A stretch of 63,385 nucleotides of DNA, filler included, from Lenisia limosa (GCA_001655205.1; 12 parts of 12 records of this genome joined end to end with filler, not necessarily neighbours in it), one strand, 5' to 3'. Counted from the whole stretch's first letter, positions 19,559 to 46,992 are shown. Translations and numbers: made by a program. Notes: generated by a model from the sequence alone, not told the origin.

Positions 19559-19674
19559 TAGGAGGGGGATTGGNNNNNNNNNNNNNNNNNNNNNNNNNNN
19601 NNNNNNNNNNNNNNNNNTTAATTAATTAANNNNNNNNNNNNNNNNNNNNNNNNNNNNNNNNNNNNNNNNNNNNT

Positions 19675-20752
19675 CCTGGCAGGAGCGCTCTACCTGAATG
19701 AGCGGTTCCGACCCTACCTATCCCCTCGACTGACGACAGTGGACTCGGTCGGCCTGCTGGTAAATGTGGCAACGCTCCTTGCAGGCATCGTGTTCAATGA
19801 CGTGGGGGGTAGAGCAGCGGTATTCCAAGTGTGGAATTTAACCTTCACTCTTGTTCTTTTAACTCTCAATCTCTTCTGATTAGACTTGTTTTCTGACTTG
19901 CTTAGAAAGCTGTGAGCTACACCTATCGAACTCTTTGGACCGTCGTTGTCCTTGTTCTTCTTGGAGGTATGCATTGTGTGTGCAAAGTAGTCTTTATTCT
20001 ACCAAATCAAAACAAGTCTCTCGATAAGCTTTGTTTTTACTAGGGCTCCGTGTAATTAATCCACTGCACAATTTGACGAGGGACATATTGTCTTGGGAAC
20101 TCTATTTCAGACAATTTAATTTCTAATTATGTGAATTAATTTCCTCGAAAAATTAATTGTTCGGAGCCGTGGTTACAACTCTCCAGGCAACATTATGTTC
20201 ATCTTTTTCGTGGTGTACGTTGAAGCCACAACCTCGGGTGAGGAAAAGCCATTGGAGGAAGACCTTGAGTGTATTGAGGTGAGTTGGATTGCACCTCACT
20301 TGATATGTTGAGAGAGCACTTCCGCCAAGCCATAGCATAGCCTATCTGCAATGAAATAGCCCATATTTTCACTCAACAGCAATGTGCGACGTTTGATATG
20401 GAGTCAGCCAAAATGTCTTCTGAGTCCGTGGTGATGACTCCATCCTTTGCCTCCAGCTACGTTTCAGAGTCCACGACAGTGTCAGGCCAAAGTAGCCGAT
20501 CAGGCCAGTACGAAACACCAGACAGCTACGGATCTGAGGTGGGGGGTGTTCTGAGAAAAAAATTCAGGATTGATGCGAAATACTGTTTAAATTTGAAATT
20601 TTAGCAGGTTCATCATCAGAGATTTATGGGAATATATTCTTTGTTTTCCACCTTAGTTTACTCCGTAGATAATCATAGATGATCTGTCTGCTGAAACTGA
20701 GTCAGATGCCGGGCTCGCTCAGCTTGAAAAGGAGCTGGATGGAGAGTTTTAG
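19675..20752 (+). CDS. CRMP-like multipass receptor paralog A, last membrane helices and C-terminal tail
   Basis: LAGALYLNERFRPYLSPRLTTVDSVGLLVNVATLLAGIVFNDVG|KAVSYTYRTLWTVVVLVLLG|GNIMFIFFVVYVEATTSG..|QCATFDMESAKMSSES..|DDLSAETESDAGLAQLEKELDGEF*. Aligns with paralog B (QAKHKPYVSPKLNNAELFGMVVNFATLMIG) and paralog C (SCQPYYVGRLSTLESVCNIVNLIVL). Confidence 0.8.
20041..20170. mobile_element. hAT-type MITE family C (~130 bp)
   Basis: TIR TAGGGCTCCGTG(C/T)AATTAA. Other copies at 38116-38243 (flanks GAATAACG/AAATAAAG) and 60532-60669; fragments at ~1735 and ~16485. Confidence 0.8.
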
Positions 20753-21217
20753 AATTGTATGATATGTATATTTTTATTGGGGGGGGGGGGGNNNNNNNNN
20801 NNNNNNNNNNNNNNNNNNNNNNNNNNNNNNNNNNNNNNNNNNNNNNNNNNNNNNNNNNNNNNNNNNNNNNNNNNNNNNNNTAATATAATGTATGTTCCTG
20901 TAGTAATTCCACTCAGTTGGGTAAAATTACTAGGTATACCTCCATGTTCCCCCTAGGTAGTCGCACGGGTCGTTGGCACTGATAAAAGACAGTCAGTGTA
21001 AGGATCAAAGGAATGCTCCGAAGCCCTATTATTCTTATACTTAGCAAAATACAACTTTTGTCATATTTTAAAGTTGTATTCTATCGTCATATTGGTAATA
21101 TATGCATAATTATGTATATTATGCATATTGCACTGATATAACTCTGAAGATATCTGTTCAAAAACTGTCAAAAGGAAAAATATCTAAATATTGACAATAA
21201 ATAATACAAGGACTACC

Positions 21218-24200
21218 TCAGGCGATGGTGTCCATCTCAGAGTCAAGCGTAACAAACATATTGGAGTCTTGCATCGGCAAGGATTGCTTCTGTTCACATG
21301 ATATGAAGTCACTTTTGGACACCAATATTAAATTACAAAAGCATTTTCATTGAAATAATCACGACAACTAACCTCAGTTTCCATGGGTCCTTGTGCTTCC
21401 AAAGCAATAAGAAACATCATAAATGCTATACTCGCAAAAATGACTGCCAGGGCAAAACTAAAGGGTAACCGTTGAAACTCAAGTAAATCATGAAAATTGT
21501 TGTTCCATCGTATCATTTCATAAATTCCCCCAAATTCTGCATGACCAACATTTCAACGATTGTAGCTGCGGAAGATGATAAACCTCCAAAAAGGAAGACC
21601 AGTCCTAGAATATTACTGTACGAGGCTTTAGGTCAAAGAGACTCGATGGAAGAGTTGAACGAAGCACTGAAAATGGAACATGAAAACACACCAACCAATC
21701 ATAAGGGTTGCAAAGTTAACCACCATGCCAAACAACTCGGCGTTGTTGAGTTTAGGGCTGACATAGGGCTTGTGCTTCGCCTGCATAGTGGCCAAAAGAA
21801 CAAGAACGACGCACATAACTTGCGCCTGGTTTGGGTTAGCACCTCAACTTTTATGATGAAAATGATTGAGTGAATTAAGAGTATAATACCATTATTAATA
21901 ATGTAATAAATGTGATATGGTTCCGAAAGAATTGATAAATTCATATTCTCAAACCCTACCTGTGTATTCGCACTATCTAAGAGGCGTAAAACGAGGACTA
22001 GGGAGAGGGACCTTGATATTACCACCAGCTCCCAGAAGTAACACAATGACGTGAACCTTGAATAGAGGAACCCATATCTATATTGTCAATAATTGAAAAA
22101 CTCTTTGAGAGTGAATAAATGTGAATGATTGTTGCGGTTCAGAGGAGGTCATGATTATCATGTACTCACTTTTGGAATACATCTTCAGACATTCGTTGAT
22201 GGTCATTGCGCAATTTATACAGTAGTTGAGCCATGAATCCAGGTACGCCAACAACCAAAATCACTGCAAATTAATTGGCCGTTTGCAGCAGAGTACAATA
22301 ACAATCTTCTGATATTTACCCAATAGCAGAGCCGTTAAATACCTGTCACGATGGCTGCAAATGGAAGATACTTCAAGTGGTCCCCTTGGTAACACTGAAT
22401 TGAAGGGGCTGCAGTGTTATAATGAAAACAACGTGTATATTATTGGCACTCATGTCATTGAAGGCAACTGGACACAATTTACTGGAGACGGATAATAATC
22501 AACAACGATGCCTACCACTTGTGACGTAAAGGTTATCTCCAATTTTGGTACAGTCAAAATACTGCAGACTCAACTACAGAATTAAAATATTCATTACGGT
22601 AAAGCGTGATATGTTGGATTGGGATAACAATACATAATACACTATACTCTTGCACAATGTAATATTATACACTGTAATAAATCTACTCTGATATGAAAAC
22701 ATATAGGCTTTCTACAGTATACAAAATCGACTCACCAAAGTTCCAGGGAGATAGAGGAGGAGAGGCAACACCAGCGACGTTCGTATCCAAGTCGATCTGA
22801 ACAACTTACGGACAGTGGGGAGTTATCCACTCCTGATATTGTAGGTTAAAGGTTATTGAATTGAATACAGATGTCATAATTTTATAGATTTGACATTTTA
22901 TACTGTCATATGTGCAAAACACATACCTTGACATTTCATGGTCACCTGATACTGCTTTCGCAATGATAAACACAACAAATGTGAAGAATAGTGCAACTGG
23001 AAGAAGAAGAAGCTTCATTACATAGTACTAAATTGATTATTATTATTAAAAAAAGTGTGAAGATCTCAATTTTAAGTATCGCAGACGCTCAATCGTTGAA
23101 ATGTAATTTATGAAACGTTGTCATTGATAACCCCACTTGGTAGAAGCCAATCTCAGCATTTAAGCTGCATTCAGGCTGTGCCACTTCAAGATTCAAATTG
23201 ACGGCTGAGAAGGCTTTTAGCACCGTTTGGAGAGCGGAAGGCCAGTTCAGGTCAAACTCTGAATAGAGTGCCGAGATCTGAGATATTAATATGTGGACTT
23301 TGTTGGCGAATAAATGAAACACAACTACCGACCTGGATGAACTGAACAAGGAGTCTGAAGGCCGAGAATCGAACAGATGTGTCACTGGCCTTAATCGTAA
23401 GCTTTATAAATGGGGTGGTTTGAAGCTTCAACCAGGTTGACCGATTTTCAAATTCCCATTAATATGTTAGTATATAATATCTTGTGACAATTCAATTTAC
23501 CACTGAATTGACATAAAAATCATCTTTGTGAGTTGGTGATGGATCCCCAACCTACATTCCAGCCAAGGGCATAAGTTACTGCAATGAACAAGAAGATGAG
23601 AATCACCATAATAGGCAAGATCCATTTTGACTGAGCCTTGCATTCAGCACATTGCAGGCCGTCTTTGTAGAATCTTGACGTACACTCCGAACAGAGCGGT
23701 CCTGTTAAGGTTATTTCGAGGAAAACTGATAATAATAAAATGTTCTTAAAAACAATTAATATGTCCATGAGTCATGATGTTTTTGTATTCCAACAATTAA
23801 ACTAACAACGCACCTGAGTAACCGTCAGCGCATTCGTTGTTTCCCAGACATCCTGTAGACGAACCGGGACACGCAGCATAGGTGTTGTCGACTGAGTAGT
23901 ACCCGGGTGCAGCCTCAGGTTCTGCCATGGCTCCTGCACAAATGGCCCCGGAAGGACACTCGGTGCAGCTGTCATCTGGGGGGATGGGGGAAATGTCAGG
24001 TTATGTATTAGTGGCATTATCCTTAGGCCTTTGGGATAATAGTCATCAGAATGCTGTGATACAATGTGGCATGTAATGGTGGAACTTCCAAAAAAACAAC
24101 GAAGACTCAAGAACCACCAAACCATTGAGAAAGTATCCAGGTGAACAGACACACATATCCTTTGAAGATGAGCCATAGGTGTGGGTGGTGGTGTGATCGG

Positions 24201-27200
24201 GACATTGTGCACAGGGTTCTCCAGATGTGACGGAGTAAGTTCCTGTTGGACATTGGATACACCTGCATAATGACTTGAAATGCCAAATTGAAAGGTAAAG
24301 GGAAGACGATGCACTATCCCACTGTATAAATGTAGTATAATACTATGTAACTTAGAAAATAAAGTGTAACATTGGTTAAGAAGATAAACCCTCACTTGGG
24401 GATGCTAAGAATGAGTTGGAACTCAGAGCCAGGCGCACATTGGCACGTATTAGAGGAGGTCATCTGGAGATGGGGGGAGTAATACATTTATTTGTTGCAG
24501 TATGTCACTATATTCAACTTTCAACGATGAAAAACAATGATAGAATCATAAAACAGTTATCTCTGCGAGCCCTTACATTGTAAAATCCGTCAAGACAAAC
24601 ACAAGTCTCTTGGTTTGATGCTTCTGAATAGTCCTGGCACTTTGTACACGCCTGAAAAACATGACAATCGCGGGATAACTTAAATAATATATATATAATA
24701 TGCAGATGTTTAGTCTATCAAACAATATTATCGTTTTTATAACGGCAGCAAGCCAGCTCACGTGGTTACCAGCCTGTGGTTTGACAGACGATGATGGGCA
24801 TGGGAGGCATGTAGATTCGGAGGGATAATGGCCTATATCACAGAGGCACTCTGTGACACCAGCGGATGTTTCCTAAAGTAAGTTGAATTCTGCGTTTCCC
24901 ACTGTTTTGTGGAAGATAATTAAACTGAGGTGTATGAGTTGCAGCCTTACAGTTTTTGTAGAGTGTGGAGGGCACTTCTTACAAATGAGCTTGCCTAAAT
25001 GGAATGAAACAATGCCAGCTTTAATGTAATAAAAACGACCAATATGAGTCATGAATGTAAAAAAACAAGTTGGAGAACAACACCTACTAGATTCATTGAT
25101 GATTGATGAGTCACTGTCACAAATGCAGCTTTTGGTCCCATTGAGTGCAATAATCTGAGAAAATAAGTTCCAAAGAGGTAAAACTCTTCAGATGTTAAAC
25201 ATGAAGAATGATACAACCACCCACTGTTGAAAATCCATTGGAACATTCACAGACTTCAATGGACGTACCGCCGCTCTTTGAGGTAAAAAGCGGTATAATT
25301 GTGAACAATATACCAGAGTGTGCATTAGCTGCTAGGGTTTCTCAAAAACAATATTAAAGTGGATACTATAATCACATAGTGTATATTATCACGAAAAAAG
25401 CTTGCAATATCATGTCAAATTCAGTTCCCACTTGAACAGCAAAGAAGTTTTCTGGACACTCAGAACAGATATCCAGTGAGCCTCCGGGGGAATAGCCTGA
25501 TGTACACATCTGGTATATCACTTGGTGTTTTTTAATCAAATACACATTTATACAAAACTGATGATATTCATACTGTTCCTGATACACACACAACCTCTTA
25601 CTTCGCAGCGACCACTTGAATCTACCCATCCATGTCCGGGTTTACAGATGCATGTACTGTTTGACTGCCAGTGTAAAACGACCTTTGAAGATGCAAAAAT
25701 AGCAACACAATAAATTGTATGAGTAAGACCTAGTAACTTCAGTATCAATAATATTCAGGGCATTTGAGAAAAGCCCAAACTGACTTGAAAATTATCTCAT
25801 TGGAAACACAATAATTGACATTCATAACCGGAACGTACCTCCAGCGTCATGGCCCCTGTTCCGCAAGGCATGCAGGTGGACTGCGGCGACAGTGTAGTGT
25901 TTTGGGGGCAAATGCATGAGTCATCAAGAGCTACGTGAAAGGTTATAATGAATGTAAATCTGGCAAAACTCAAAATCCAAAGCTTCCATACTCCCCAATA
26001 TAATTGAGACAAAATATCAACCAAACAAAAAGCCACGAAAAGCCGAGGCTTCTCAGATAAAACAAATGGCATACCTTGGATAAATGTACCAGAGCAGGTG
26101 CACTGGTCAGACGAACTAGAACCTTCAGCAACCGTAGTCAGCCCCTCTGGACACTGGGTACATGTCGCTGCGTTCTGTTGGGTCGAATACGTACCAATCT
26201 GAATGTCAGAATCAAGTTGTCCAAGTCTTATAACACAACCCCTTCCCCACTGAGCATGGTTGACACGTCTCTCCACGCAATGTTCCAGGGTTACAGACAC
26301 AAACGCCTTCAAAATCCGCGGATGAATTTGATAAATACTCGCTGCAAACCAGAGACGACGCCACAATCTGTTTTGATGGTTATCCAAAAGGGAAAAGCAA
26401 CAATAAGACGAAAAAAGAGTCAGGGTCAATATTGATCAAAAAGATCAGGATTCCTACCAATTTCTCAGATTGCATTTCGTGCGCCATGAATTGGAGGGTA
26501 TGGTTTCCACCTTCGTGTGGAACCACCTTCAAGTTTAAAATCAAAGTTGAGATGAATGTGAGGTAAATACACAATGCTTCGTACTCAAATGTTCTGTTGA
26601 TTCATTGAAGGTGCAGAACTATAGACATACGTGTAAAGCACTGAACACAACTTCTCCTGAAGCGTTACAATCCTCTATGGCTCCAGTGATCTGTTGGGGT
26701 GCGGGGGTCACAATCGCATAAGCCGTGCACATTGAGGGTGCAGCAAGTTGGTCAGAAGCACTGACGGTCTAAATGGTGGTCAAATCAAAGTGGAAAATGA
26801 AGGAACTCCATGATTAATTATCTCGTAATCATCAGCTTACTTGCAAAGAGATAGAAGGAAGGATATTTCCATTAAAGCTTGTGGGTGTTCCAGAAGTAAT
26901 CTGGAGGGTCAGACTATACAAAATGGGACATAGCGTAGTGTGATATAGTAATACATGTACACACACGTACATGGAGTGTCTTAGTTCAGAGTCTGAATAA
27001 CCAACCTTTAGTGCTTTGGGGAAGTAGTACACCACGGTAAACTTATGAACCTAAAGGATTATATTAAGAGATTTGCGATATAAACATCTCTTCTGAGAAG
27101 GCAACCTCCATCACACCTGAATATCTACAGTGATGGTCAGCTCAAACTCTCCGGCATCCAATACAGGTAGGTCGCAGTCAACAATAATCTCATTACGTGA

Positions 27201-30200
27201 AGAGCAAATTCCTTGATAATCAGATACAGTGTCAGCGAACTGGAATATGATCAATTGATTCAATGCTGCAAGCGCAATTATAACCATACCAGTTTGGCCA
27301 TTTAAGGACCATTGTGGAGGAGATGCAGCAGAGAACCCAGAACCAATCACTGTTATCTGAATCGTAAACCTGAAGTTATTTGGAAGAATGGCAAGAGTAT
27401 GAGTTGTACGAGGAAAATGATCAAACTCCTTTGAAAAAGATGGTGTAGCCGCGGGCACAACCAATCAATAAAAGCTATATCCATTGAAAGAGTCAACATT
27501 TTCATGATAATTTTTCCAATTTCCCAATTGTATCAATTGTCCTACCCTCGATGACGCTGATGTAGCAGCTCTGGTTGATAAATGTGACAGCGGCATCACC
27601 GTGGCGACTACTACTGTGTCTCCAGCCTGAAGGGTTACATTTAACAGATCATTAATAAATTCAAACATGAAGATCACACGAGGAAAAGTGTCGAGTTTTA
27701 TCAAAAAAAAAAACCACAATTTTACATAATACACTTACAATGCTTGTGACATGCCGATGGTCCTCGAGATATTTACTATTGTACCCAATGGAAATGGAAA
27801 TAGTCGCTCCAGTTGCCGGCAAATAAGCTGCTTTATCAGTTTGTTCATAATACCGCCATCATTTTATCCCCTTTTACTTGGGCTGAAGTCACACTGTTGT
27901 CTCAAGCCATTTTGTACGAGGTTTTTACTCATAAATCTGCGAGGCTCTCCGGTTGACTAATCAATCAGCATTTTTTAAACCTTCGCAACAAAATGTGACA
28001 AATATTATGTATTTTTGAATGGGTTTGTATCATATTTAAGTTCCAAAGAGAGAGCTTGGTAAGAAAGACGATCCTCAAGTGACTCAAACAACATGATATG
28101 TAAATTGCAATGAAATAATCACATTAGGAAAGGGATGCACCATACTATTACCCACAAACTGCCAAATAAGAAAAGATGCAAGTTACAGAAGGTGCGTAGT
28201 CGTCAATCGGCTGAGACAGTTCCATCTATCAGTCCATAAACCTCAAACAAACAGAAGAGCAATCAATAGACAGAATAGCAATCAATAGACAGAATAGCAA
28301 TCAATAAATTGCATATCACCTGAGTCCACAACCAACATAGAACGTGGAACCTGCAATTACGGGGAATGCGGTGACCTCGGGAAATTGCGGCAAAATGTAC
28401 ACCTCACGTGAGTACAACAAGTACCCGCCCGATAATATCTTCAATGTCTAAAAAAATGGGTCAACAAACTCTTAATTTTAATTCAGATTTAAAGAATAGT
28501 GCTCAAGCGTTCAAGATGGATTGTTGAATGAAGTCAGCCCACTTGGTTGCCTTGAAGGTGGTGTGGTATACTTGATATTGAAATGTCATGTCCACCAAAT
28601 CCAGCTTGACCTTGGGTGTAAGAAAACTATGGAACATATAAGCAATACTCTAGAAATCAATGGATTAGTAATCACCCCAATAAAGTTGTGGCGTAATCAA
28701 AAATATAAATGAGAGATTTTTGAAAAAGCATCATGTAATACCGAATTATATTTAATGATATGTATGTAATCATGACCCAAAATAGTCCTATTCCTGAAAT
28801 AGTCCTGTACTCCGTCCACGCACTTAAATGGAACTGAGTATCGGCAATTTGCACTTTGGTTGCGTCTGGGCAGCTTGTGGTCTATAATGTAAAAAATAAT
28901 CTGGAAAAAACTGAATCAACGCTGCAATTAGTGCCTACCCTGTCAACAACAGCTCGAGCACCAACCTAAATATAATAAATTTCAAATAAGATGTCACATC
29001 AATAGTGCAAGCATCAAACCACATACAGTCAAGCAAGGGTTGCACGTAGACAACATTTCACCGTTTTCGGTTTTGCATTTGTCCCGTCCACAGTCCAAAT
29101 CCATGAAGAGCGCAGACTGTGGTATAAAATAACAGAACAGGAAATTATTATTCCGAAATGTTCCTTTGTGTTCAATATACATTGTATCCTATTTGGTGCC
29201 AATTAAGTTTAATAATATTGACAAAGAGTCTTACCACTGCGTCAGCATAATCACAAGAGGGAGGAGGAGAATAGGGTCCGGACTCTGAAACAGTTATTGG
29301 CTGTAATTGTAGAATTATCCGCAATAAACTTATTCGAGAGATATCCTGTAACCTCTCCCACTCATTGCGATATAGCCAGCAGTAATAACATCCGGTTCGA
29401 CGGATATGTATTTTTCCTGAATTGGTAAATCAGATGAAAGGAAAAAAGGATTCGCACCCAAATGCCAGTAAACGTGTTATCAGGTCTGCCAATACTGTCA
29501 GTATCCCCTCTTCGGAAACAGGTCTTTGCTGCATTGTGAGAACCGTTGCTAAGAGAAAAGGGACAAACATTTATCACAAAGGACAGCGTTTGCCTCGTAA
29601 AAGGCCACCATTGGGGTGTCAAAGGTAGTTGCGTTAAATATATCATAACGAGTTGCTGCAATGTTCTACAATGGTAAAAACAGTTGTGTGACTCGAAACT
29701 TGATATTGATAAAATAAACACTCTCAATCCGAAAATGGGAACACTTTAAAGTTGGTTGCGGTTGGGTATATTATAGCAATGATAAATACAAAATAAGGTT
29801 GTATCTGGCCGAAGCCATCCACACAATCACGCTCTCAGAGATATTTGATTGCAGCATAATATCACCCAATCATTTGCCTAGCAACTCTGTGTTGGGGTGT
29901 ACCAAAAGATATGAGACTTGAACTAACCATTGACGGGACAGTGTCCACAATAGCACTTGGGGGGTTACACACCAGAACGTCTTCGGAGTTGTCTAATGAG
30001 TCAGCCATTAGTCCATAGAAGGCCTTCAACAAACCTGTGAAGAAAACTAGGTAGTCCAGGTTTTTGTTGATCTGAATGAATAAGCACAGGTTTCACAGAG
30101 CTTTTTATAATATCATACGAGTAGCAAGTATGACAATCATTTGTTGATAAAATAACTTGCCCTCAAACCTCAAAAGAAGATACATTTCTACCTGCTAATT

Positions 30201-33200: not shown

Positions 33201-34870
33201 ACAAAATTGTATCATATTCTTCAGATTCAACAGTGAAAATATGCAAATCACAAAATCAAAATAGAAATCGATTCCTACAGCAAAATAGAAATAGATTCCA
33301 ACAGCTTGCCTTTTGCAAACATTCTTGTTTTCAAAATGTAAAGGTAAATCCTCAAACCCATTTTCTGAAAGCAGATTGTAAAGTTCATCAAAAGATGGCA
33401 AGCTAGTATAACGTTTTTTGGCGGCGTATATGACGTTGTTGGTGCCCCAAATTAGGTTACCAAAGACATCCCTAAATTGGTTGAGGGAGAATAAGAATAG
33501 GTTTCTGGAAGCGGTTGAGTGTGAACAATATTATGTCTATCGATCAAAACTGAAAGATATATTCTGTTTGTCATACAAGAACCCGAAAAAATATAATAAT
33601 GTGCAACTATGTGAAAATCATGCATATGGAAGTAGTAATAAGCAAAGGAAAGCTATTATTTGGCTCATCCGCTTACTTAATCGATGTGTATTTGAGTTGA
33701 GCATCCAAGTTGAAATAATGCTCAGTCTCTTTCAGGGAAGTTGCAGGCATGCCATAGAGGAACGTTCCTGCTTTGGAGTAGACCAATGTTACCACTGCGG
33801 TGTTAGAGTCAAAATGTCACCACTGCGGTGTTAGAGCCAAAATGTTAGAGTCCTCAAAGCAACTCTTGATGAGCAGCAGGCCAAGCCTCATCCGAGATAA
33901 ATGGTGTTTAATCTATGATTCGTTCGTGATGTAGCTTTAGGAAGAATATTATTTGTCTATTTGTATTTCTCGTATATAGATATGGATATAGTTAAACAAA
34001 CGTAATAAGAAAATGATTCCATAGAGCCAGCTGTCCTTCCTTGCAGCCATCGTTAATCTGTATCAGTTATGGAAGTGATCACCTGAACCAACCAACTACT
34101 TGTTCAAGGGACTAGAATGAAGTTCAAGTATCTTAGACAGCTAATATGCCTGTTGACTCCCTGTTGAGGACATAATACTTGTAGCTTCCAGAATTGCTGT
34201 TGAAGGCGGATAAGTTGAGAGATCCGAGGATAAAAATGGGGGGTGGAAACGCTTTAGTGGATATTGTCCTTTATTAATTATATGGTTTTGTGAATATTCT
34301 TGAAATATTAATAGGGAAAGAGAAGCTGTTCGAAGAGCTGAAAGCGGGAAAAGAGAATCTGGCTCGGATTTCACTATCCGCCTTTAACCCGTCTCTTTTG
34401 TGATTGCAGACCCTCCTCTCGGCCTTCTTTGCCATTTGCCTTATATTTGTAATTTTGACCAGATTAATCTTCATCCTCTGCTGAAGTTCTCTTCCGCTCG
34501 GATACTGATCACGTCATCAGCTGAAGGGAACACTACACATGACCTAGGTTGCTACTTCCTTTGGTATGGGGTTGAGTGGTGATGGACTGGAAATAGAGAG
34601 ATGTTGTAGTTGAGTGGTGTAAATCTTCGCGAATATTTGGAGTTTGTTTGCTGGTCATCGTTTAGGAGTTTAGGATATGATACTTGTCCTCCTGCTTGTT
34701 CTTCTCCGAGTTGCTCTCGGTATGCTTCCCTAGACCATAAGATAAAAGCCACATGTTATTTCTTTTGAATAAATGTTCATATAATGGTGACAATATTAAA
34801 GGAAACTCACCTCCTCAATGAAATTCGAAATCAGGTGTGAAAAGGGACCATTATTCATCGACACCTGTAA
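21218..34870 (-). CDS. Giant cell-surface receptor-like protein, paralog B: unknown N-terminus, TIG/Ig-like repeats, GCC2/GCC3 Cys-rich repeats, CRMP/TRP-like multipass domain; 5' end uncertain
   Basis: Exons include VVTLVYSKAGTFLYGMPATSLKETEHYFNLDAQLKYTSI (donor gtaagc, ~33686); VIGSGFSAASPPQWSLNG (TIG-like); CVCNPGTLRGETCQPCSVG..GTYSTQQNAATCTQCPEGLTTVAEGSSSSDQCTC; CADGYSGPLCSEC; RFSAFRLLVQFIQISALYSEFDLNWP; YGFLYSRFTSLCYFWELVVISR; stop TGA at 21218-21220. Confidence 0.85.
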
Positions 34871-35325
34871 CCAGCGTAGCCCTTGATGGTGTTGGTGTTA
34901 TCGGAAACCCTTTTCTGGGCGAAGCTGGTCCAATTTCCCCTACAAATCCGGTGGGTGTTTTCTGGCACCCATATCCTCTGATATAACAACTCTTACATCT
35001 ATCTCCACAGCGTTGGGTTGGGCTATCTCCACAGCATTGGGTTGGGGTATTGGATGGATGATGAATCTGTTCAGAGTTTAACTCCCAAGCTCTTCCTGGA
35101 AATCGCTGCAACCTTCCGTCCTGGTGTTGCAATTGAGAAAGCGTGTTTGGTAATGTTAGTGGGCCGGAATATTCGGCTAATTGCTAAACTTTGAAAGAAC
35201 GTTTCTGCTCAGTGCATTGGTGTTGTTCATCGTCTATGATATTTACATATATATGATATGATATGTTGCTGGCGTGAAACATTCTAGAATTGTTAACTAT
35301 TTTGCTTCTGACCCCCCATCCTCAG

Positions 35326-38300
35326 GGAAAATGATACTCCAGCTTTGTTCTTTAAAACAAGTGAGCTTTATGTATTACGGCACTTTTTTTTTTATTTGAA
35401 CATATCATATTTAATTATTTGATGATATCTTATATCCATATCCTTGTGAATGGGATGAAGGGTGAAAGTAGCTGTTTAAGCCCATTCTTTTTCCTCAGCT
35501 ATTCTTGATCTTTTATCCCTTTTTAGATGAAGCAACTGATAATGTCTATGTTGTTGAGAAGGTCTATTGGCATGAAGGAGATTTTGTATGCTGGATGTTG
35601 CATTGGGCTTTCATCTTTATATGTTGGTGTTTAGCATTAATTTGAAACTTTAGGACTCAGCCCAGTCACTAGGCACCTTCGATGCTCTCCATTGTGGCAG
35701 TTATAAATACGCCATTACTGTTGACGGTATGACACGAAGCCTTATGCTGTTGAAATTTGAAATTGTGAAGCTTGGCCTTTGTGTCATAGTTTGCTCATAG
35801 AACACCAAACAAGCAACCTATGAAATAGAATATTATACAAACATTCAATATCCAATGCATTGGTAACATCTCCCAATCTTGATATGAAATGCTCTTTTGC
35901 CAATCACCGCTTGAAGCATCGCGAAAAGTTGTTGCTTATAACTACCGTGGCGATACAACTTCGAGGTTTGCAAAATGTAGCGTTAAATTTGCTAATGGTG
36001 TTTTCAGATAAACACTGTGTTAATTCTGAATACGACTTTATTGCCTTTGAGGATGGGGTACATTTTGAAAGAACCTTAAGGATTTGATAACGTGCAAAGC
36101 CATTTCAGAACAATCTTCGAATAAAAGTCGATTTGCATCTTTAGCTTTGTAGTCAAATGTTATATTCTTGAAACTGATAATGGCAGCACTTCACCTTTGT
36201 CTATTGGTAACCAGCCGATTCTTCCTGCTGATTGCGACTATCAAAGAGGCCTTTGCCTCAAAAACCCTCCAGGTAAGGAAGAAAACTCTCTCCAATGTAG
36301 TATGTCTTGCACTGGTTGAATTATAGGTGTTTATAATTATGATTAATGTTGTAGCGAAAGAAGTTGGCTTCATTCTATCAAGTGGAGCGATTCACTACCA
36401 GAACTCATCCGACATCTTTCTTGGATTCCCTTCAAAGTCTGAGGGGGCTTACTCCAAATTGTGAAACCTCTGTAATAGGATTTCACTTCGATTCAATACC
36501 GGTTAAGTGTCAATAATTTTCGAAGATATATCAAGAAATTCAGTCTTTTTTCGAACCGAAAAATGAAGCCCTACTCTGTACTAAATGGTACAATACTCAC
36601 CTACGATTCTCACTGTTTTAGGGTGACATATGCACAGAACTTGTTCACTATTGAGGATGGTAAGCAAATAATTGCATTTATACTGTAGATACCGGTGCTA
36701 CGTTCACTTTCAGTGACAGTCGAATTGGACTGATAACGTCAATGAATCAGTAAGTGAAATCAAAAAAACTGCAATATGAATGTCAGATTGGAGGTTTACA
36801 GTTATTTAAAGGAACCCCCAAGTTTGGTTTACTGTGGCGACTAAAATATGGATTTAATTTTACATTTCGGCACACCTCATTTCCTCACGATCTAGATGGC
36901 CAACTGACTACTCATTCACCGATATTCGCTGCGCTAGAAAGATGGGGTGGTCCACTAACAAAATGTGTTACCAAAGTCTGAGAGAGGCTGCACTATTATT
37001 ACAATCAATTGTTTTTCAAAACAAGTCAAAAACTAAGAATTTTAGAGAAAGACGGGACCTTTTCCCCCTTGAGCTCCAATTTGGCTCCTCCAGCTTACGT
37101 AACTGATTTGACACCTATGGATGAAGGATGCTACTTCTTCAAAAACCCAGGTTTGGAGTAATGTCACTCCATTTTGTTAAAACCTTTGCCTTTATTATTT
37201 CTGGTATCACTGTTTCAGCAAATGAGATTTTTGTTTGGAACGATTGTTTGGCACATTACCCAAGACATGCTGGAATTGAAGGTATGTATGAAGGCTATTT
37301 CGACATTAATACAAAACCCAGCATTTACTTATTACATTTAGACGATCCTTCTGATCGCTTGGCACGGGTGATTCTGGAACCCCACCCAGAGGATGTCTTC
37401 CATCCACGCTATGTCGTATTTCAAACTGAAGGTGGGAGCTATGATATTTTCAAAATATGGTGTAGACCTGCTAATGCATTTGTCCGCCAAGCTACATATA
37501 TTTTTAACCTCCAGCAAACGAATGGTATTTTTATAATGGCTTCACAAAAGACCCTTTGCCGACGCCCACAATCCCAAATGGTCAAAACTGCAGGTTCATG
37601 GACGCGATGGTTGTGTGTATGTGGGAGTATTTGTAGGTAGTGTATGGTATCCTGTTTCAAACACTGGTTTATATCTCAAAATCTCATTTCCCCGAATAGT
37701 TCTTCCCATTCAGTTTTTATTGTCGAAGTCTGTTTTGACATCAGATATGATATGTTATTCTTTAGGCAATTCTCACGACATTGTTTGGTCTGCGTTCCCG
37801 ATGGATCATCTCAACTCCATTGTTAGTTTCCATTTCATTGTCTCAAACATTAATCAATCATTTACTTGAGATGTTGACTTTATCGGTCATTTAAACGAAA
37901 ACCCAAAATCACATCTGATGGTCCATCTGTCAGAATAAGTCGCACCTCACATACCAGATGACTGGAGCTACCGCCGATATTATTGAAGCTACGCAACACG
38001 CTGTGCTCTTTGGTTGGCTTTTGGTGATTTTGGTGGATCTTGGGTGATTAGTGGGAAACTCCTTTAACCATTTGTAATATAATTGAGTTCTATTCCGGCT
38101 TTTATTTGAATAACGTTGGGCTCCGTGCAATTAATTGGAAAATTAATTGCAGAATTTGAAGTGTGACCTATTGTCATGTTACTCAATTTCAGAAACTTTA
38201 ATTTCAAATTTTGTCTTTAAAAAATTAATTGCACGGAGCCTTAAAATAAAGTGTAAGATGTTGAAAATGAAATACCTCTAGTAAATGAGTATAATGTGCA

Positions 38301-41300
38301 CATTTACGAGGGTTGACACTGCAGATGACGGGTCTGTCTACTCCTATGACTATCAGAGATTCCTGAACCTATCATCATCTACAGGCAAAGTGAGATGATG
38401 AGTATTTACAATGCTTCAATAATTCTAGATAATGTATATGAAAGCAATAATGATGCTTAATTAGCCGGATGACAATTATTTTCCATCATCAACGCCCAGG
38501 CTGTTCACCTTGGAGCGCGTTACTTTTCAAAGGAACAGAATTTCGATGCGGGTACTACTGTGTTCAATGGTGTGCTTTTCTTATTTAGTGCTGGATAGTT
38601 GTGGCAAAATACAACCATTGAATTGAAGAATGGTTAAAAAACGAGCCATTTTGACATTGCGACTAACTGATTAGAAAACAACGAGGGGTTTGCATTTGGC
38701 AGCGGCTTGACTTCCTCTGTTGGACGTAGGCAAATTGGTCCCTATTCCTCTCCCCCTAATTGTAAATTATATAAATGATATATTGGTGTTCTTCTTTCTG
38801 ACCTCAAGGTGACACGCGGTGTGATGGCGGGACTCTTCTGGCATCCGATCCCGGAGGTGCGTGTTGGAAGCACTTCAATACCAAGAAGGGGGCATAAAGC
38901 ACATATTTTTGTCGTGTCCTTCATCAACGCACTTAGTTTGGAAGCTTGACCAGCCTTCATTGAAAGACATGGCCTGTGATTCCAATAGATGTTATTTTCT
39001 GACAGGTGGGGGGACTCACTGTTCTTCAAGGCAATGTATTATGCTGCTAAGGTATTTGATGTCACGATGTGAAGAGCATGAGGGTGATGGTGTTTAATGT
39101 GAAGAGCATCAGGGTGATGGTGTATAATAATCGTGATTGCAACTCGCATTTTACTTTTGGAATCTTAGAAATCCCAAGCTTCTGTAACTTAATTAAGGTG
39201 ACAATGATATACTACAATGCAGCCCTGGTCCCGATACGACTTCTTCAGGGTGTAGCGAAATGACAGGCCTAAAGCGAAAAAGCACATATTACTTTGGATC
39301 AGGTATGTAACCGTTAAAACAGTCCACTTATATTTTAGATGAAAGGTACCAGTATTGTTTTGCAGGAACCGTGAAAACCTTAACAACAGATTACATCGGG
39401 TTCCATGAGTACGTTGAGTTTTCAGGTATGGGAAAACTACATTAACCAACAAAATACTAGTTCGCTCATTGTTAACATATTTTGATGTGCAGTGTCTGTT
39501 TCATCCGAATTAATATCTAACTATCTAGTGTCAGGTAATGTCAAGTGGATGAACGGAAACACAAACCGACGCAGAACGGGCGGTATTTCGAAAGTCCTTG
39601 CTGGATTCCATTACACCTTCTTTGTTGAGCACGGTAGGCTTCGCTTTTCATTTTCTATTTATTCTTCAGCGCCTTCTTCTGAAAACAAGGTTGCAACTTT
39701 AACGGATTACTGGCCTAAAACAGCTTTTTATGATATTCCATTCAATATCACTTATGAATTGGTAGGTTGCAGAATCCTTGATTATTGAGATTGGCAATTA
39801 TCAACCATTTGTATTTATTCCTTCAGCCCAACTTGGCGGGTTACACTGTTCAAGACGCACAGATGTACCATAACCATCTTGGGTTCCCCACTACCCCCGG
39901 CTATCAGGTATGCTTCATAGTGGAATTCAACCATGTTTATCTATCCTACCTATTTCTATTATACACAATGGAATCGATAACCTGGTGCCATGCAAAAATG
40001 AGATTGTCGTTGATAAATTTAATCTTGTAATGTTATTTGTTTTACCGCATTCAGTCCGGCCCCACGACTATTGTTGCTGGCCCTATTAAGGAGACTTACA
40101 GCCGTGCTTACGTGAGTCATTATGCTTTAGGGATCATTGTCATTTTATCGTGTTTTTGGAGTTTTATTTAATCTGCAAAATCCCGAAAGAGCTTCTGACA
40201 AATTAGACCAAACTCGGTGTGGACGGATTCCAGGCCCCACAAGTTGGCGTGACAATGGTGTCTTTCTCGACCATTTTACCCATGAGCATTGGGCCTCCTG
40301 TAGTGGACTTTGACCTAACCATCCCCGAGTTCACAATGAGCGACTTGTCATTGATTGTACGGTGCCACATTTTAACTGTTTATTCTCAATATGATATTTT
40401 ATTAATTATGTTCAGTTGGAATCTCAACATGATAATTAATGATGTTCAGTTGGAGTTTCAGCTTGTTGAAGAAGTATCTAAAACTGCGATTACGTGCCCT
40501 CTGGTTCCCACAACAGAAGTTGGCAATATTACAATCAGCTGTGACCTCTCTGTCCTTGAGGGGGGTTTGACTTTCTTCATGCGGACAGTGGTAGGCTGTT
40601 TGTTCACTTTGAGGGGAGCATCTTCAATTATTTGCTTTTTTTGTTTAACATGTCAAGGCTCTTGGAGATATGTCACTAATTGATCATCCCTTGGTAAAGT
40701 ACACCACAACTCCTGACCCTGTCCTTCAAAAAATTAACACCCCGATTGTGAGTGTTTTGACGATGACAGTTTCAAATGGGGATTGTTGGTATGGTATTTA
40801 AAACTTGGTCTTTGTTTTCTTTTCTGATGCGGCAGGTTGAGCTAAGCGGTACGGAAGCCTATGTCTTAATCTCTGGTCTTGACTTTATTTTTTCCCCTGC
40901 TTCAAGGTAATACCGCTTGAAACTGGCTCCTTATCATTAGATGTAAAATTGGAAACTACACGACTGAGATTCTCTCATATTCCAAAACAGTAAGTTGGAC
41001 GATTCTCTGTGATTCTGAAATACTATCAGTTCTTATACGGCTTTGGTAATTATCTCTACCCTTTGATGATATGCATTCAATTTTCAGTTCCTCCACTTGT
41101 TTCAGATTTTACGAGGTTTTTACAGTTTAGCTTGCAAGATGTCACATTATTGAAGCGATCCCGGAAGGTATTTATCTGGTATGATACCCTTATTCCTCAA
41201 TAGATATTGTTGTTCTTTTCTAGTATGGCTCAATTTACCACACTGACCGAAATTTTCTTGTTTATTTGAGTTCAGGTCCAGATTTCAGGCTTTGATGGAT

Positions 41301-44300
41301 CCACTTATACAGAAGCTAACGATACTCTGACGGTGAAGATCGAGCACATCACTGAGATGCAGGTTTGGTCGTTTCTGTTTGATGTTCATTCTAAGCTATT
41401 GATTTTCAGTCTTTATCATACCTTTGAACTTATTGCTTATGTATAATTTATGATTTTAGATCGTGAATGGATTCCCTCTATCTATCAATTACACTATCTT
41501 GGCGGATCCTCTTGTGTTACAGGTGTGTTTCGAACATTGATGTAGATGTTTCATATTAGTGTTGTTATATCAATAGTAATATATCTGCTAAAATGTTTAT
41601 ATCCCTATTAATTATCAATCAGAAATGCTGCAGTCATTGGAGAATATTTTGAAAAGGAACATTTCAGTCAAATCAAGGATTTTGTTAACTCCGCAGACAA
41701 CCCTTTTTGGTGTGGACTCCCCAATATTATTCTGCTCAATCAACATTGTATTTGACCCTCTGCCCTACTATTCGAAAGGAACAACAGGTTTGGCGTCGAT
41801 GACAATGGGTAGTTTCAGAATGTTTACTAATCACAGGAAAGCAATCTCTGAGTGTTTCCCCCTTCATTTTATTGTTCAGCCTTCTGTGAACAAGGAAAAG
41901 TCGTATTCAAAGATCTCGTTGCTCATCTCATTCCAAACACTCAACACTTTGTGGGAGACCTCTTGTATTTATTACTTGTGGAGTACACAGTTGGACAACA
42001 TCATATCATAAAATGTTTTTGTATAAATTGAGGCTCTGCTTTTAATTGGGGAGAAAAAAGTTGTTATGAAAGTGCCCTTTTCCTCTCACCCTTCAAGGTG
42101 AGCTTTATTTCAGCTACTCGAAGTGTGAGAAGTTTCTCAAATGCGGTGAGTGGCTTGTGGGATTGTTCAATAGCATAGTAAGCTAATAAAGGATTGTAAT
42201 GAAAAGATGTCAGTCCCTTTTATTTTGCTCCATTTGCAGACTTCGACGTTCGGGTCTTCATGCGCTGACATTTACACGAACTCCATTGAAGTGAAACAGA
42301 AATGTGTCTGTAGCAAGGTTGGGGTTTGCTGTGCTACATACGAAGTGATTTCTCTGGATTTACAGGATTACTGTTAAATACCAGTATAATAGAGGGACTA
42401 TGAATAGCCTAGATATAGACGGATTGTCAAAAGCACCAATTTAATATATGTTGGAAGTCAGCCTTCTTTTGATTCATCAAGGGACTTCAATTGTCTTCTT
42501 CACAGGTCTGTGAAGCTTGTCCCAAAGCTACATTCAAGAATGTTGACTCAGTGGAGGTATGGCGAGTTTATCACGTCAGTTTCAACTTGTGTATCTGGTG
42601 CACATTTTTATTTTTGGATTCGTTATACGCATCATTACTCATGCCTTAGGACTGCACTCCATGCAGTGATCAATTCGCAACATCGCCCTCTGGTTCTGTC
42701 AGCCCCTTTAACTGCACATGTCTCAGTACTTTCGAAGACTCTTCAGGTACATGGTGTTCTGAGTGATTTTGAATTACAATAGTGTTTGTGATTGAAAACA
42801 TTCGTCTTGTCAGGATGACATAGAATATTCCATTTTTTTATTCTTCAGAGGGCTGTCGATGCCCTGCCAACCACACCATGCTAGCGTCCTTGGACATTTG
42901 TGTCAAATGTGAATCCTCTGCCGTCTCTGAACCTGGTGTACTTCGGGATTACTGTCAGTGTTTACCAGGTATGCTAGACTCACACCCAGCCAAGAATTGA
43001 AATCTTTGTCTTGGAAATTATGTGATACCAATAACTACCACCGCCAGGCAAGAGGTATTCAGCCACCGAATCAACATGTGTTGCATGTCCACTTGGGTCT
43101 TACAAGAATGACGTTGGAAGACACCAATGTACGCCTTGCTCTGGCGACTTAACAACTCTAGAGTAGGTTGTGTTAGATTCACAATCAAAAGTGTACCATA
43201 CAACCCTGAGCCAATGCTGAAGGTTATCCCTCATGTGTATTCAAGAACTGTCATATACTGTGAGTAGACATACAATAAGATATGAATTGAAACAATTTTC
43301 CAACTCTACCATTTGTACGCTCTGTTCCATTTCAAAATTATCATCTCAACCTTCTTGTCTTCTTTTAACGGTTATCAAGTTTGTTATTACCGTTTGTTTA
43401 GTTTCAGATTATCCGATTCGTAATAAGTACCTCATAGAATTGGTGCTACTTCAGTACATGACTGCGTTTGCCCATTGGAAACTACACTGGACCCGAACAA
43501 TTCAACAAAGTGCCACTGTCCGTGAGCGGGATCGTTTTCATTTTGACTAGCTTCTCTTGAATAGTGTAAAGCTGTTAATGTTCGATCGTGTGCTCTTTGG
43601 GTGGTTACGCGCCTGGACAGTTTTTGCACCATGCCATATTGTGAATGTATTGAATGTTCCAAATAACACCCAAGTTCACCATCGCTCCTCTTTGACGGAG
43701 TTTGTGTTGAATGCGAATCTGGGAAACAGTTTGACGGAAGCGAATGTGTGTGTTTGGCGGGCTACGAAGACTCAACTGGCGGCGGGTGCTCAGCTTGTCC
43801 TAAAGGCTCTTTCAAGGAACTCGCGGGAATTGGAGTAGGAAAGGGTTATGTCTCTTATGATGCCTGTTAGGGGTGATATGAAGCTGCTGTGTCCCCTGAT
43901 TTTTATAACTGACACTCACACAACAGTCATGTGAGTCATGCCCTGGGCAAATGGCTACTACGAACTTTGAAGGTTCAACATCGCCAAATGACTGTAAATG
44001 CCAGCAGTTCAGTTCATCTGACGGTTCTGACTGTTATTGTGTTGCGGGCACTTACCTCAGTGCCATTGATGGGTAGGCTTGGAATCAGTGCTATTGATGG
44101 GTAGGCTTGGAATTTGATTTCGCCAGTAGTGTTGCCTGGTGTTTCCTAAGCAATGGTATTTTATCAACTATTACTCTGTCAAAAGCCATATTTTGATACT
44201 CGTTTCAGCGTCATCACCATTCAGATGTGTGATTTGTGAGGAAGATAGTTTCCGATCGAAATCAATGGACTCCTCTAGTTGTGAACTATGTCATGAGTCC

Positions 44301-46992
44301 ACGCTCGGGAGAGGAGGTAGGCTTTATTATGGGACAATACGAGCTGTTAACCATTTGGTAGAGAATCTTGAATCTGATTGAACCAATAATTTTAGTTTTA
44401 CGTTATACTACTATTTATCGTTTCATAGCCTGGGTTTAATCAAAACAAAAATATGGGCCTGAGTGAAATTAAACATGAACAGGGGCTGGGCCTTAGTTAA
44501 ATTGAACATGAACAGGGGCGACTCTGGCGTCGACATCGTCTTTCTGTCAATGCCGCCCTGGGTACTACCTTGAGACTGAGCCTGAAGACGACTCCTCTGT
44601 TGTGGCATGTGCGGAGTGTCCAAATGGCGCTGTTTGTGCTGGTTGGTTGGTTATACAAAGAAATATTACGTTGGACTTTTGTTATATCCTTTGACGATGT
44701 GTACCTTTGTTCCCTATTCAAAACAGATATGAACTGTACCTTTGTTCCCTATTTATTATCCAGGTGGTTTGGCCTCCCCGATTGCAGCTGAAGGCTTCTT
44801 TGCCTCCAACTCCGATGACAGTGCCTCGCCCGTCTTTCTCAAATGTCCCTCGGGCAACGACGGATGTGTTGGTACGCTCTGATTCCTCTACTTGAATCTT
44901 GATGATAGTCTTTTTTGTAATATTAGTTTAACCCTGTGAAATCCAATATTACTATTTATAATAATTGGTTACCTTAGCATCTTAGCTTATCTCAAATGAC
45001 ATTTCAGGTTCGTCAAACTGCGCAGATGGATTTGAGGGGGACCTGTGCTCGGAGTGCTCAACAGGATGGTACAAAACAGGACAAAGCTGCCAAGAGTGCT
45101 CTGGTCTTTCTTCGCTTGTTTTGCCCATGATGGTATGAAAAGGGCTTATTTGGACTCACACTTTTAGATCATCATCTTGGTGCTCTCTATTCTGATTATA
45201 TTCTTTTTGGGCTACAATGCCAAGCCTTCATCCACTCGTTTTGCTCCTCTGAGGATTCTCATCCAATTCATTCAGGTCCGTCGGTTTTGATCGTCTGATT
45301 AAAGTATTTATCATGTATGAATATTATTCAACTCGAAGTGAAGCTTTTCTAACCACTCAAGACTGTGGCTGTCTATTCAGCGTTTGATGTGAAATGGCCA
45401 GAAGCAGTGCAAACGGTTATGGACGTCTTCAGAACTCTCAATTTGGAAATTGAGGTTGGCATGGGTCTACTTTTGATCCTAACTTTTATGAGTATTTTTC
45501 CTCACAAAAGTAGGTCGCACGACCCGAATGTTCACTTATGCAAATGGACTATTTCGAGGTTTGTAAAGGGATAGAATGAGGGCAGCGTTGCAACGTTGGC
45601 TTTACCAAAATGATTCTGCGACTTATTTTTCTTTCAAATAGTCTATATTCCCAAATTTACACCCAGTACTACCTCCTCCAAAACCTGACCATTCCCCTCG
45701 CTGTTCTTCTCGCCTTTGTACTGACTCTGATTGTCGGCCTCTTCTTGGATTCAAGCTTGGCCAAGTGGGTTATTTATGTGGATTTGATATGAGCTCCGTT
45801 TTGAATGCTATCTTTGAGACAATTGACTGAAGAATCACATTTTAGGGATGGCCGGATCCAGACCACTCTGGTGATCGCCTCGGTTTTTCATTTGGCTGGG
45901 TCACTGACCAGTCTGGATTACGTCAACTGCCAGCAGGCTGAGGATGGAAGATGGCTTATGGTGTCACGTGAGTGGGAAACGAGACTCCCATGGCTTTACC
46001 CTGGGATTTTACGTCCCAAAAATATGTTTCAGTTTATTATGTCATATCCAAGCCTTTTCAGTGCTCCTCTTTGTTGCTCAATTGATAAGTGCCTTCTCCA
46101 AATTTCACCTAACATAGTTCTCACTGTTTTCACTATTTTCAAGACCCTTCAGTGGAATGCTACGGGTCATCGCACTTGTCCAACCTTCCACTGTTTATTC
46201 TCGCGGTTATAGTTAATGCCTTCTTAGTTCCTGTACTTGTTTTTGGTAAGTCATACTCAGACTGCAAAATAACATACTTAAATCCTTATCGTGTAGTGCT
46301 TTTAAATAGGAACAAAGATACTCTGCTTGAGGATACCAACTTGAGAAGGTTTGCCATTTATTATGCAGTAGCACATTATAACAATACAGATATGGGGTTT
46401 TGACTGCACGATTTTCCCCTGACTTTTGGTTTTGGGAACTGGTTTATTTTGCCCGTTCATTAGGCTTGGCATTTGCCGTGAAAGTCGTTTCCTCAAGTCC
46501 AATTACGCAAGTATGAACTCGATAAGGCGTTAACCCTATCTTTAACTTCTACATTATATAGGATTACATACATAATTGTGAAGGTTTGAGTTTCAGATCA
46601 TGCTTGTGGACTTTGTAATTACTTTCCAGATCATGCTAGTGGCCTTTGTACTCATCCTGGCCCAAGTCGGCTCAGCCTCTTGCCAGCCCTATTATGTCGG
46701 CCGACTCTCCACTCTGGAGTCTGTGTGTAACATCGTCAACTTAATAGTCCTCTGCTGCTCGCCCTCGTTTATTGTACCTGAGGTAGGCTAATCATTCAAA
46801 CAAGTACTGTTTTCAATTTCCATGTTGAGGCAAGATGAAAGTCTCAGATTAAAAAATATGATCAGAATTCCAAAGCATTTATCTTCAAGGATGGAAGTAG
46901 CCCAGCCGCGTCTGATAACCTTCCCCTCACTGTCTTGATTTTGGCATGCTTCATGTCCACTCCAATAGTGACTGTTTGGGCACTAATGACGG
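35326..46992 (+). CDS. Giant cell-surface receptor-like protein, paralog C, same architecture; 5' end uncertain, 3' end cut by spacer
   Basis: Many short exons, including GYSATESTCVACPLGSYKNDVGRHQCTPCSGDLTTLE; CVCLAGYEDSTGGGCSACPKGSFKELAG; CQCRPGYYLE..CAECPNGAVCA; CADGFEGDLCSECSTGWY; RFAPLRILIQFIQTVAVYSAFDVKWPEAVQ; LDYVNC..VECYGSSHL; LPLTVLILACFMSTPIVTVWALMT. Confidence 0.85.
36476..36573. mobile_element. hAT-type MITE family A with 8-bp target duplication, intronic
   Basis: TAGGATTTCACTTCG...CGAACCGAAAAATGAAGCCCTA; flanks CTCTGTAA and CTCTGTAC. Confidence 0.85.

Follow-up and report, generated by a model that had tools for sequence, protein, structure and literature searches.

Three clustered genes for putative multipass receptors of the DUF7630/TRP-like family in Lenisia limosa

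Organisation of the locus

The window analysed here is a stretch of 63,385 nucleotides (nt) from Lenisia limosa (GCA_001655205.1), made of 12 parts of 12 records of this genome joined end to end with filler. One contig within it, at positions 19674-47108, carries three genes that we call A (plus strand, 3' end only), B (minus strand) and C (plus strand), in that order. The original prediction, made from this DNA alone, described them as a cluster of large receptors resembling the cysteine repeat modular proteins (CRMPs). The observation itself was confirmed and the interpretation partly supported. As judged by sequence, A, B and C very probably belong to the DUF7630/TRP-like (PF06011) family of nine-helix receptors. 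The best overall explanation, to which we give a probability of about 60%, is that they are surface-receptor paralogs of a pan-eukaryotic multipass family, of which the CRMPs are only a distant branch. The features are listed in Table 1.

The contig is eukaryotic DNA of about 40% G+C, devoid of long bacterial-type open reading frames (ORFs), and the locus is present in a public polyA-RNA run and in a DNA run of the same organism. As predicted, A lies tail to tail with B: their stop codons (TAG, 20750-20752 and TGA, 21218-21220) are separated by 465 nt as written (466 had been claimed). This interval includes a run of 89 N. The ENA contig ERZ3820729 NODE_112 (48,478 nt; locus L001), reached by exact look-up of the called ORFs P0001 and P0110 and walked via loci L001, L002 and L003, is 100% identical on both sides of this gap and carries 44 nt, with no N, in its place. 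A Logan DNA contig, whose left flank is only 21 letters long, likewise has 44 letters across the gap. The true distance between the two stop codons is therefore about 420 nt and A and B are truly adjacent; since the gap sits between the stop codons, it leaves all reading frames intact. A run of 13 G (20779-20791) directly precedes the gap and is probably its cause.

NODE_112 begins 31 nt before position 19674 and extends about 21 kb past 47108. Gene A, cut by the start of the contig, is limited to the last ~80 residues of the membrane module and the cytosolic tail. Beyond C, tblastn with the B and C proteins (pB and pC) detected no further paralog over 18 kb of NODE_112 (window-equivalent 47.3-65.5 kb), ruling out a longer array downstream of C. 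Of the locally expanded array initially proposed, the three genes thus stand, without another copy in the next 18 kb. The visible cluster consists of three genes at one end of a 48.5-kb contig, and could continue upstream of A, off the contig.

Table 1. Features of the A-B-C locus in window coordinates
Feature	Position	Strand	Basis or remarks
Gene A, 3' part	19674..20752	+	spliced polyA-RNA contig, four GT..AG joints
Assembly gap, 89 N	20792..20880	.	real sequence 44 nt, intergenic
Gene B, well-supported part	21218..27827	-	34 exons, median 80 nt; RNA joints, collinearity with C, relatives
B membrane module	21382..23871	-	DUF7630 and ~9 helices, residues 1241-1627; hydropathy scan
B cysteine-rich run	23814..26367	-	13 CxxC motifs in the paralogous part; Ephrin_rec_like (GCC2/GCC3), DUF7631, start of DUF7630
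B TIG/IPT-like domain	27048..27575	-	residues 703-767; custom TIG profile, 20.2 bits
B N-terminal half, presumed	27828..33322	-	gene-finder prediction
C N-terminal half, presumed	34250..39669	+	gene-finder prediction; plus signal exceeds minus from ~34.25 kb
Gene C, well-supported part	39670..47108	+	gene finder, 36 exons at 39670-46991; collinear with B
C TIG/IPT-like domain	40863..41329	+	residues 897-961; custom TIG profile, 10.9 bits
C cysteine-rich run	42240..45132	+	13 CxxC motifs in the paralogous part; Ephrin_rec_like, DUF7631, DUF7630
C membrane module	44844..46961	+	DUF7630 and helices, residues 1468-1830; holds a 35-nt intron

Transcription, splicing and gene models

Contigs from the RNA and DNA runs were aligned to 19674-25600. 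Genes A and B are spliced and transcribed, as shown by polyA-RNA contigs with at least 10 GT..AG joints on the minus strand (B) in addition to those of A. The B joints cover the introns from 21290-21372 through 22797-22926, plus 24263-24395. In the RNA-supported region introns measure 79-220 nt and exons mostly 55-130 nt, and most introns carry a T-N-A-Y motif about 8 nt ahead of the acceptor AG. The exons of A (19674-19801, 19906-19966, 20187-20278, 20380-20538 and 20669-20752) encode the last two helices of the module, followed by a cytosolic tail that is acidic and rich in Ser; the 3' untranslated region reaches at least 20791. The RNA-supported spliced exons of both genes are open in the standard code, A ending with TAG and B with TGA. 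This agrees with the original statement that no ciliate stop-codon reassignment is required, and rules out the alternative code (TGA read as Trp) used in the ENA gene calls.

The models were extended using a splice-aware dynamic-programming gene finder, trained on the RNA-supported exons and introns and then iterated, which enforces an open frame. It recovers all RNA-supported exons and, when short introns are allowed, the first membrane helix of C. In the well-supported part of B, a TIG-like domain is followed by cysteine-rich repeats, DUF7631/DUF7630, the nine-helix module and a short cytosolic tail, and the same order is found in C. The last membrane helix of C is at 46890-46991; the cytosolic tail continues past the part of the contig included in the window, with exons at window-equivalent 47234-47290 and 47455-47531 (locus L002).

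The short intron of C (45133-45167, GTATGA...CTCAC...TTTTAG, phase 0 to phase 0) can be read directly from the DNA. Introns of 34-41 nt are predicted in both the B and C models, in which the median exon is 80-93 nt long and introns number about 11 per kb of coding sequence.

Upstream of the C-terminal halves of B and C, a model trained on those halves alone scores the sense strands about twice as high as the antisense; in the N-terminal half of B, for instance, the coding and splice signal on the minus strand amounts to 33.8 per kb against 14.8 for its antisense. The coding signal switches from the minus to the plus strand at about 33.5-34.3 kb, which fits the predicted head-to-head arrangement of B and C. 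About 780 N-terminal residues in B and about 970 in C are gene-finder predictions only. These halves are provisional, since their exons have no similarity to each other or to any fetched relative.

Within the presumed N-terminal half of C lies an open frame of 171 codons (37125-37637, plus strand), whose start resembles a signal peptide. A frame of this length is unusual in this DNA, about 0.05 being expected by chance. Pfam returned no match for it, its codon score was neutral, a lead to Fibrinogen_C in the Atlas was weak (0.85) and the AlphaFold2 model had a pLDDT of 31. The frame may be the first large exon of C.

A cysteine-rich ectodomain continuous with the membrane part

Pfam scans were run on about 30 single exons or open frames, the N-terminal halves being covered piecemeal. 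Ephrin_rec_like exceeded the Pfam cut-off of 23.1 bits in both genes (37.4 bits in C and 26.1 in B), in line with the GCC2/GCC3-type repeats described originally. In B, matches were obtained at 24124-24261 (E 7.6e-6, the one above cut-off), 26076-26174 (E 1.3e-4) and 24762-24872 (E 0.09); in C, they were at 43035-43163 (E 2.2e-9) and 43909-44073 (E 9.5e-4). DUF7631 was weak in both, with E 0.008 for the B exon 23815-23973 and E 8e-4 for C at 44512-44691.

DUF7630 was detected in C at 44986-45135 with 32.8 bits (E 7.8e-8; Pfam cut-off 27). In B, this domain is divided over two exons, 23814-23975 and 23556-23701; the former, scanned as 23815-23973, matched DUF7630 with E 0.045, and the latter encodes the end of the domain together with the first membrane helix. 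A single reading frame therefore spans ectodomain and membrane part. Similarly, transcript-derived relatives from Pygsuia biforma carry both parts in one complete ORF. Separate transcripts for the two parts, which the original prediction had envisaged as a possible objection, are thus not what is found.

TIG repeats had also been reported in B and C. Pfam TIG gave no match on single exons. A hidden Markov model (HMM) built from 114 TIG repeats of family relatives, for which the best of 200 shuffles scored 4.9 bits, identified one TIG-like domain per gene and no clear run of repeats; the claim holds for the domain and not for the run. No Kringle, MAR, lectin or EGF domain turned up in the Pfam scans of the ~30 exons and open frames.

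A membrane module shared by the three genes

To score the membrane region we used a family HMM (alignment A3) built from 18 database relatives, without any sequence of the window, and 600 composition-matched shuffles as a control. Scores were 285.5 bits for B (profile positions 2-429), 219.0 for C (2-419) and 36.6 for the fragment of A (352-429), compared to 6.0 for the best shuffle; the three genes do share a multipass domain, as had been noticed. The match of B occurs in segments of 154 and 147 bits, together spanning positions 2-429, and that of C in segments of 152.9 and 81.9 bits.

The conserved residues of the family include Q, WP, PEC, two loop cysteines, R and P..N. Among the 29 columns conserved in at least 80% of the family, 26 are kept in B and 23 in C. 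Gene C retains all the invariant cysteine, WP, PEC and R columns, three positions excepted. The membrane motifs singled out in the original prediction (Q..WP, PEC, C..C, WE and PY) correspond to the most conserved columns of the family.

B and C are also collinear in tblastx, from about 27150/40528 to 21703/46752 (minus strand of B and plus strand of C), and their spliced models share 30% identity over 878 residues (E 2e-111). Judging from these sequence comparisons, A, B and C are tandemly clustered, divergent paralogs.

Nearest relatives and family tree

We searched 1.84 billion proteins with a profile of the loop exon (F..WP...PECS), the most strongly conserved single exon, built from B and two matching pieces of C (alignment A1). 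It retrieved 85 proteins at E<=1e-3, many of which have 1,100-3,200 residues and match within the C-terminal third. The similarity extends well outside this exon: P0002 aligns to residues 823-1645 of B (E 2e-61), P0023 aligns to B with 31.6% identity (E 2e-60), and P0004 covers the B module end to end (phmmer E 5e-59, residues 2-379). The named nearest relatives are from P. biforma (Breviatea), Thecamonas trahens (an apusomonad) and Mantamonas plastica (CRuMs), the rest being environmental.

Proteins of these three organisms (for example EP00033_P002679 and XP_013755275.1, AMSG_08032) have the same order of ectodomain, Ephrin_rec_like, DUF7630 and nine-helix module, with 25-35% identity in the module (E down to 2e-61). 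They differ in their ectodomains, which carry Kelch, ankyrin, PMP, filamin, cadherin or many TIG units. The relatives carry Ephrin_rec_like and DUF7630, and P0018 also matches PF06011 above cut-off (30.3 bits). When the 18 aligned modules were scanned, DUF7630 was found in 13/18 and PF06011 in 7/18 (best E 6e-13). Atlas and word searches located the module in green algae, haptophytes, cnidarians, sponges and ciliates, where it is joined to varied ectodomains (TIG, cadherin, LRR, PMP).

Other searches were negative. The word-based search from the membrane region of a Thecamonas relative returned no CRMP, and that with one open frame of B had no match. A metagenome scan with the 'YG.L..RF / FWELV' exon profile gave 139 pattern matches, 0 of which were confirmed, and exact look-ups of three window ORFs found none on record.

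In a maximum-likelihood tree, B and C are sisters (100/98), nested in a clade with Pygsuia proteins and one environmental sequence (98/95). The branch of C is more than twice as long as that of B, it keeps fewer of the conserved columns, and the RNA run contained 0.00 of the sampled words from 41200-47100, the 3' 6 kb of C, while A and B were covered. C, and possibly others, could accordingly be silent or decaying duplicates, the array being a by-product of local duplication instead of a working set of sensors. We find this rather unlikely. The RNA run is tiny (47 Mb), so the absence of C is weak evidence; errors in the C model would lengthen its branch as well; the invariant columns are largely retained, as described above; and C has an open spliced frame with good splice sites over its 36 exons, although an open frame is enforced by the finder. 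C may lack expression in the condition sampled, or its constraint may be relaxed.

Predicted fold of the module

The fold was modelled with AlphaFold2 on alignment A3 with P0004:28-460 as the first row; this relative, 30% identical to B, serves as a proxy in the comparisons below. In the model (pLDDT 84.8, pTM 0.84), a small cysteine knot rich in beta structure is accompanied by about nine long helices and by an outer loop that carries a disulfide. Its best matches in AlphaFold DB clusters are Thecamonas proteins, proteins annotated 'TRP C-terminal domain' and ciliate membrane proteins. A fragment of P. yoelii CRMP2 comes 18th (E 1e-13, TM-score 0.71) and residues 1688-2181 of P. falciparum CRMP2 come 24th (E 5e-13, TM-score 0.68), both over nearly the whole model, with a probability of 1.00 and 18-20% identity. 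Among Swiss-Prot models, Dictyostelium DDB_G0281931 reached a TM-score of 0.72, SadA 0.57 and Schizosaccharomyces pombe Pkd2 0.58; Flc1-3 and YOR365C also match, the fungal set lying at 0.51-0.58. Thus the Thecamonas proteins, the 'TRP C-terminal' proteins and DDB_G0281931 match better than CRMP2, whereas SadA and Pkd2/Flc are below it. By this proxy, the module of a close relative is shown to share its predicted fold with Plasmodium CRMP2, SadA and Pkd2/Flc. These results agree with Singer et al., who noted a resemblance of the CRMP core, with its nine transmembrane helices, to AlphaFold DB models of Dictyostelium proteins, and the lack of any solved homolog (PMC9815656).

Among solved structures, the best Foldseek match in the PDB had E 0.15 and a TM-score <=0.2. 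The best hit of the VIA wide search, with Z 8.2 over 94 residues, is helical noise, and the family profile matched among PDB sequences only an Ephrin-receptor Cys-rich region (E 0.04). With no match to a solved structure, the fold is neither that of a G-protein-coupled receptor (GPCR) nor that of a canonical TRP or polycystin channel. The canonical tetrameric TRP fold with six transmembrane helices was thereby ruled out, neither Foldseek on the PDB nor VIA having matched one.

Divergent adhesion-GPCR-like receptors would have been suggested by the observations of Sparvoli et al., who pointed out that PANTHER labels TgCRMPa and PfCRMP1 as 'GPCR-like' and that the CRMPs of Tetrahymena may contain a GAIN domain (PMC9670195). 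In our case about nine helices make up the module, and taste-receptor rows in Swiss-Prot reached a TM-score of only ~0.15; no GPCR was matched in the fold searches described above. The GPCR fold was rejected and this explanation is close to refuted.

CRMPs have a core of nine transmembrane helices and an Ephrin-receptor-like ectodomain, their cores have been modelled as heterodimers (PMC9815656, PMC9670195), and they function on the surface of the parasite, at a step before rhoptry discharge (PMC9670195, PMC9815656). CRMPs and their Tetrahymena relatives are required for rhoptry or mucocyst discharge, respectively (PMC9670195). PfCRMP2 (Q8IBR8) and TgCRMPa/b resemble B and C in their large cysteine-rich ectodomain, Ephrin-receptor-like units and C-terminal nine-helix core. 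A, B and C could on this basis be functional counterparts of alveolate CRMPs, that is, contact sensors triggering the discharge of an extrusome-like secretory organelle, a reading to which the common plan, the CRMP2 fold match and the discharge phenotypes all lend some support. However, CRMP2 is distant and ranks behind many non-alveolate proteins, the nearest sequence relatives are those of Pygsuia, Thecamonas and Mantamonas, and the exons scanned showed none of the Kringle, MAR or lectin domains. No partner or exocytosis genes were seen on the contig, which was searched for them only by similarity to B and C. Moreover, CRMPs proper were described as apicomplexan-specific by Singer et al. (PMC9815656), and the rhoptry-discharge role with the partners MIC15 and TSP1 is found in the parasites only (PMC9815656, PMC9670195). 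We therefore consider such counterparts distinctly unlikely. The CRMP likeness of the original prediction holds for the plan and, through the proxy, for the fold, with CRMPs as a distant branch that other proteins outmatch; nothing links A, B and C to extrusomes, and the suggested role in extrusome firing has no support. Resemblance to CRMP/TRP-like proteins in general is found, in the CRMP2 fold match and in the PF06011 matches of the relatives.

Proposed role as surface receptors

A, B and C are probably large type-I-like multipass proteins, new members of a widespread, poorly understood receptor family and not orthologs of the CRMPs. Their plan would comprise a variable extracellular region, with an unrecognised part, at least one TIG-like domain and about 13 CxxC (Ephrin_rec_like/GCC2_GCC3) units, then a juxtamembrane DUF7631/DUF7630 cysteine knot, a PF06011 module of about nine helices of the fungal Flc/Pkd2 type, and a short acidic tail.

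Characterised relatives give some indication of what such proteins may do. SadA, a surface protein with nine transmembrane helices and EGF repeats, is needed for substrate adhesion and phagocytosis (PMC2173991). Like B and C, SadA (Q8I7T3) and DDB_G0281931 (Q54T82) have nine transmembrane helices after extracellular repeats, of EGF or leucine-rich type; sequence identity is only 13-21%, and SadA carries just three EGF repeats in ~950 residues. Reconstituted S. pombe Pkd2 passes Ca2+ upon membrane stretch (PMC9727806). The fungal Pkd2, Flc1-3 and YOR365C have the Pfam family (PF06011) and the predicted fold of the membrane module in common with our proteins, but their N-terminal domain is small and of lipid-binding type, without cysteine repeats and DUF7630, and identity drops to 9-12%.

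By analogy with these relatives, the three proteins would be located in the plasma membrane and expose their cysteine-rich part to the exterior. The ectodomain would bind a surface or ligand, on the substrate, prey or partner cells, and the nine-helix module would relay the signal, most likely as a stretch- or ligand-gated cation (Ca2+) permeability as for Pkd2, possibly in pairs of unlike paralogs as modelled for CRMPA/CRMPB. That binding is passed on as cation flux is a tentative proposal, which we rate at somewhat less than even odds. A stronger version appears improbable: that unlike pairs are obligate, such as co-expressed A and B, and that the locus exemplifies, in a free-living organism outside the alveolates, the ancestral channel or receptor for contact sensing that gave rise to CRMPs, SadA and Pkd2/Flc.

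Fungal Flc proteins act in the endoplasmic reticulum (ER). A, B and C might likewise be Flc-type ER or Golgi proteins involved in Ca2+ or cofactor homeostasis and not surface receptors, since the module is of the same Pfam family and fold as Flc1-3 and YOR365C. Yet an ectodomain like theirs, cysteine-rich, over 1,200 residues long and equipped with TIG and Ephrin_rec_like domains, is characteristic of extracellular proteins, protist proteins are better matches than the fungal ones, and the better-matching characterised proteins, SadA, CRMPs and Pkd2, act at the surface (PMC2173991, PMC9670195, PMC9727806). This alternative seems unlikely to us.

Several points weigh against the surface-receptor reading. 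The N-terminal halves, signal peptides and start codons are predicted only, so the surface location is indirect, and with Flc proteins in the ER a plasma-membrane role is not guaranteed. The direct PF06011 match in the window is below threshold, at a C exon (46382-46513, the 'YG.L..RF..FWELV' exon; E 0.05, 12.8 bits, positions 278-319); PF06011 gave no match on single exons of B, and Pfam on single membrane exons otherwise returned noise only. The fold model is that of P0004, 30% identical to B, and not of B itself, and the close relatives are all functionally uncharacterised. Finally, C was unseen in one small RNA run and has the longer branch (1.43 against 0.6), so that it may be silent or decaying.

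Malaria and Toxoplasma CRMPs are essential for invasion. The module that CRMPs, SadA and Pkd2/Flc share is without a solved structure and, to our knowledge, without an agreed mechanism. The locus by itself adds little to this. It does show the module fused via DUF7630 to a cysteine-rich ectodomain in a free-living protist, and its nearest sampled relatives, in breviates, apusomonads and Mantamonas, argue for a pan-eukaryotic family and not an alveolate speciality. Seen in this frame, CRMP biology becomes comparable with non-parasitic and possibly more tractable members.

Neighbouring sequences and public gene calls

Downstream of C, at window-equivalent 51.8-54.8 kb (locus L003), the plus strand has a coding-like signal with cysteine-rich units of the form 'C.PC...P.DGN.CG.CL.GF'. 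This gene has no Pfam match and no similarity to B or C, and is flanked by minus-strand coding-like signal at window-equivalent 47.5-50.5 and 54.8-62 kb.

Upstream of B and C, a short inverted match links 32588-32626 (minus strand) to 34996-35034 (plus strand), with 8/13 residues in tblastx. The copy on the C side sits within a small tandem repeat (34943-35077). The match may have been left by an inverted duplication or may represent a promoter element common to both genes.

On NODE_112 the public gene calls are ORFs of bacterial style, which lie in frames other than the B open frame used in the word-based search, translate TGA to Trp (code 4) and continue across introns. These artefacts are nevertheless stored as database 'proteins'. 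One of these calls, P0001, is the top match of the loop-exon profile search.

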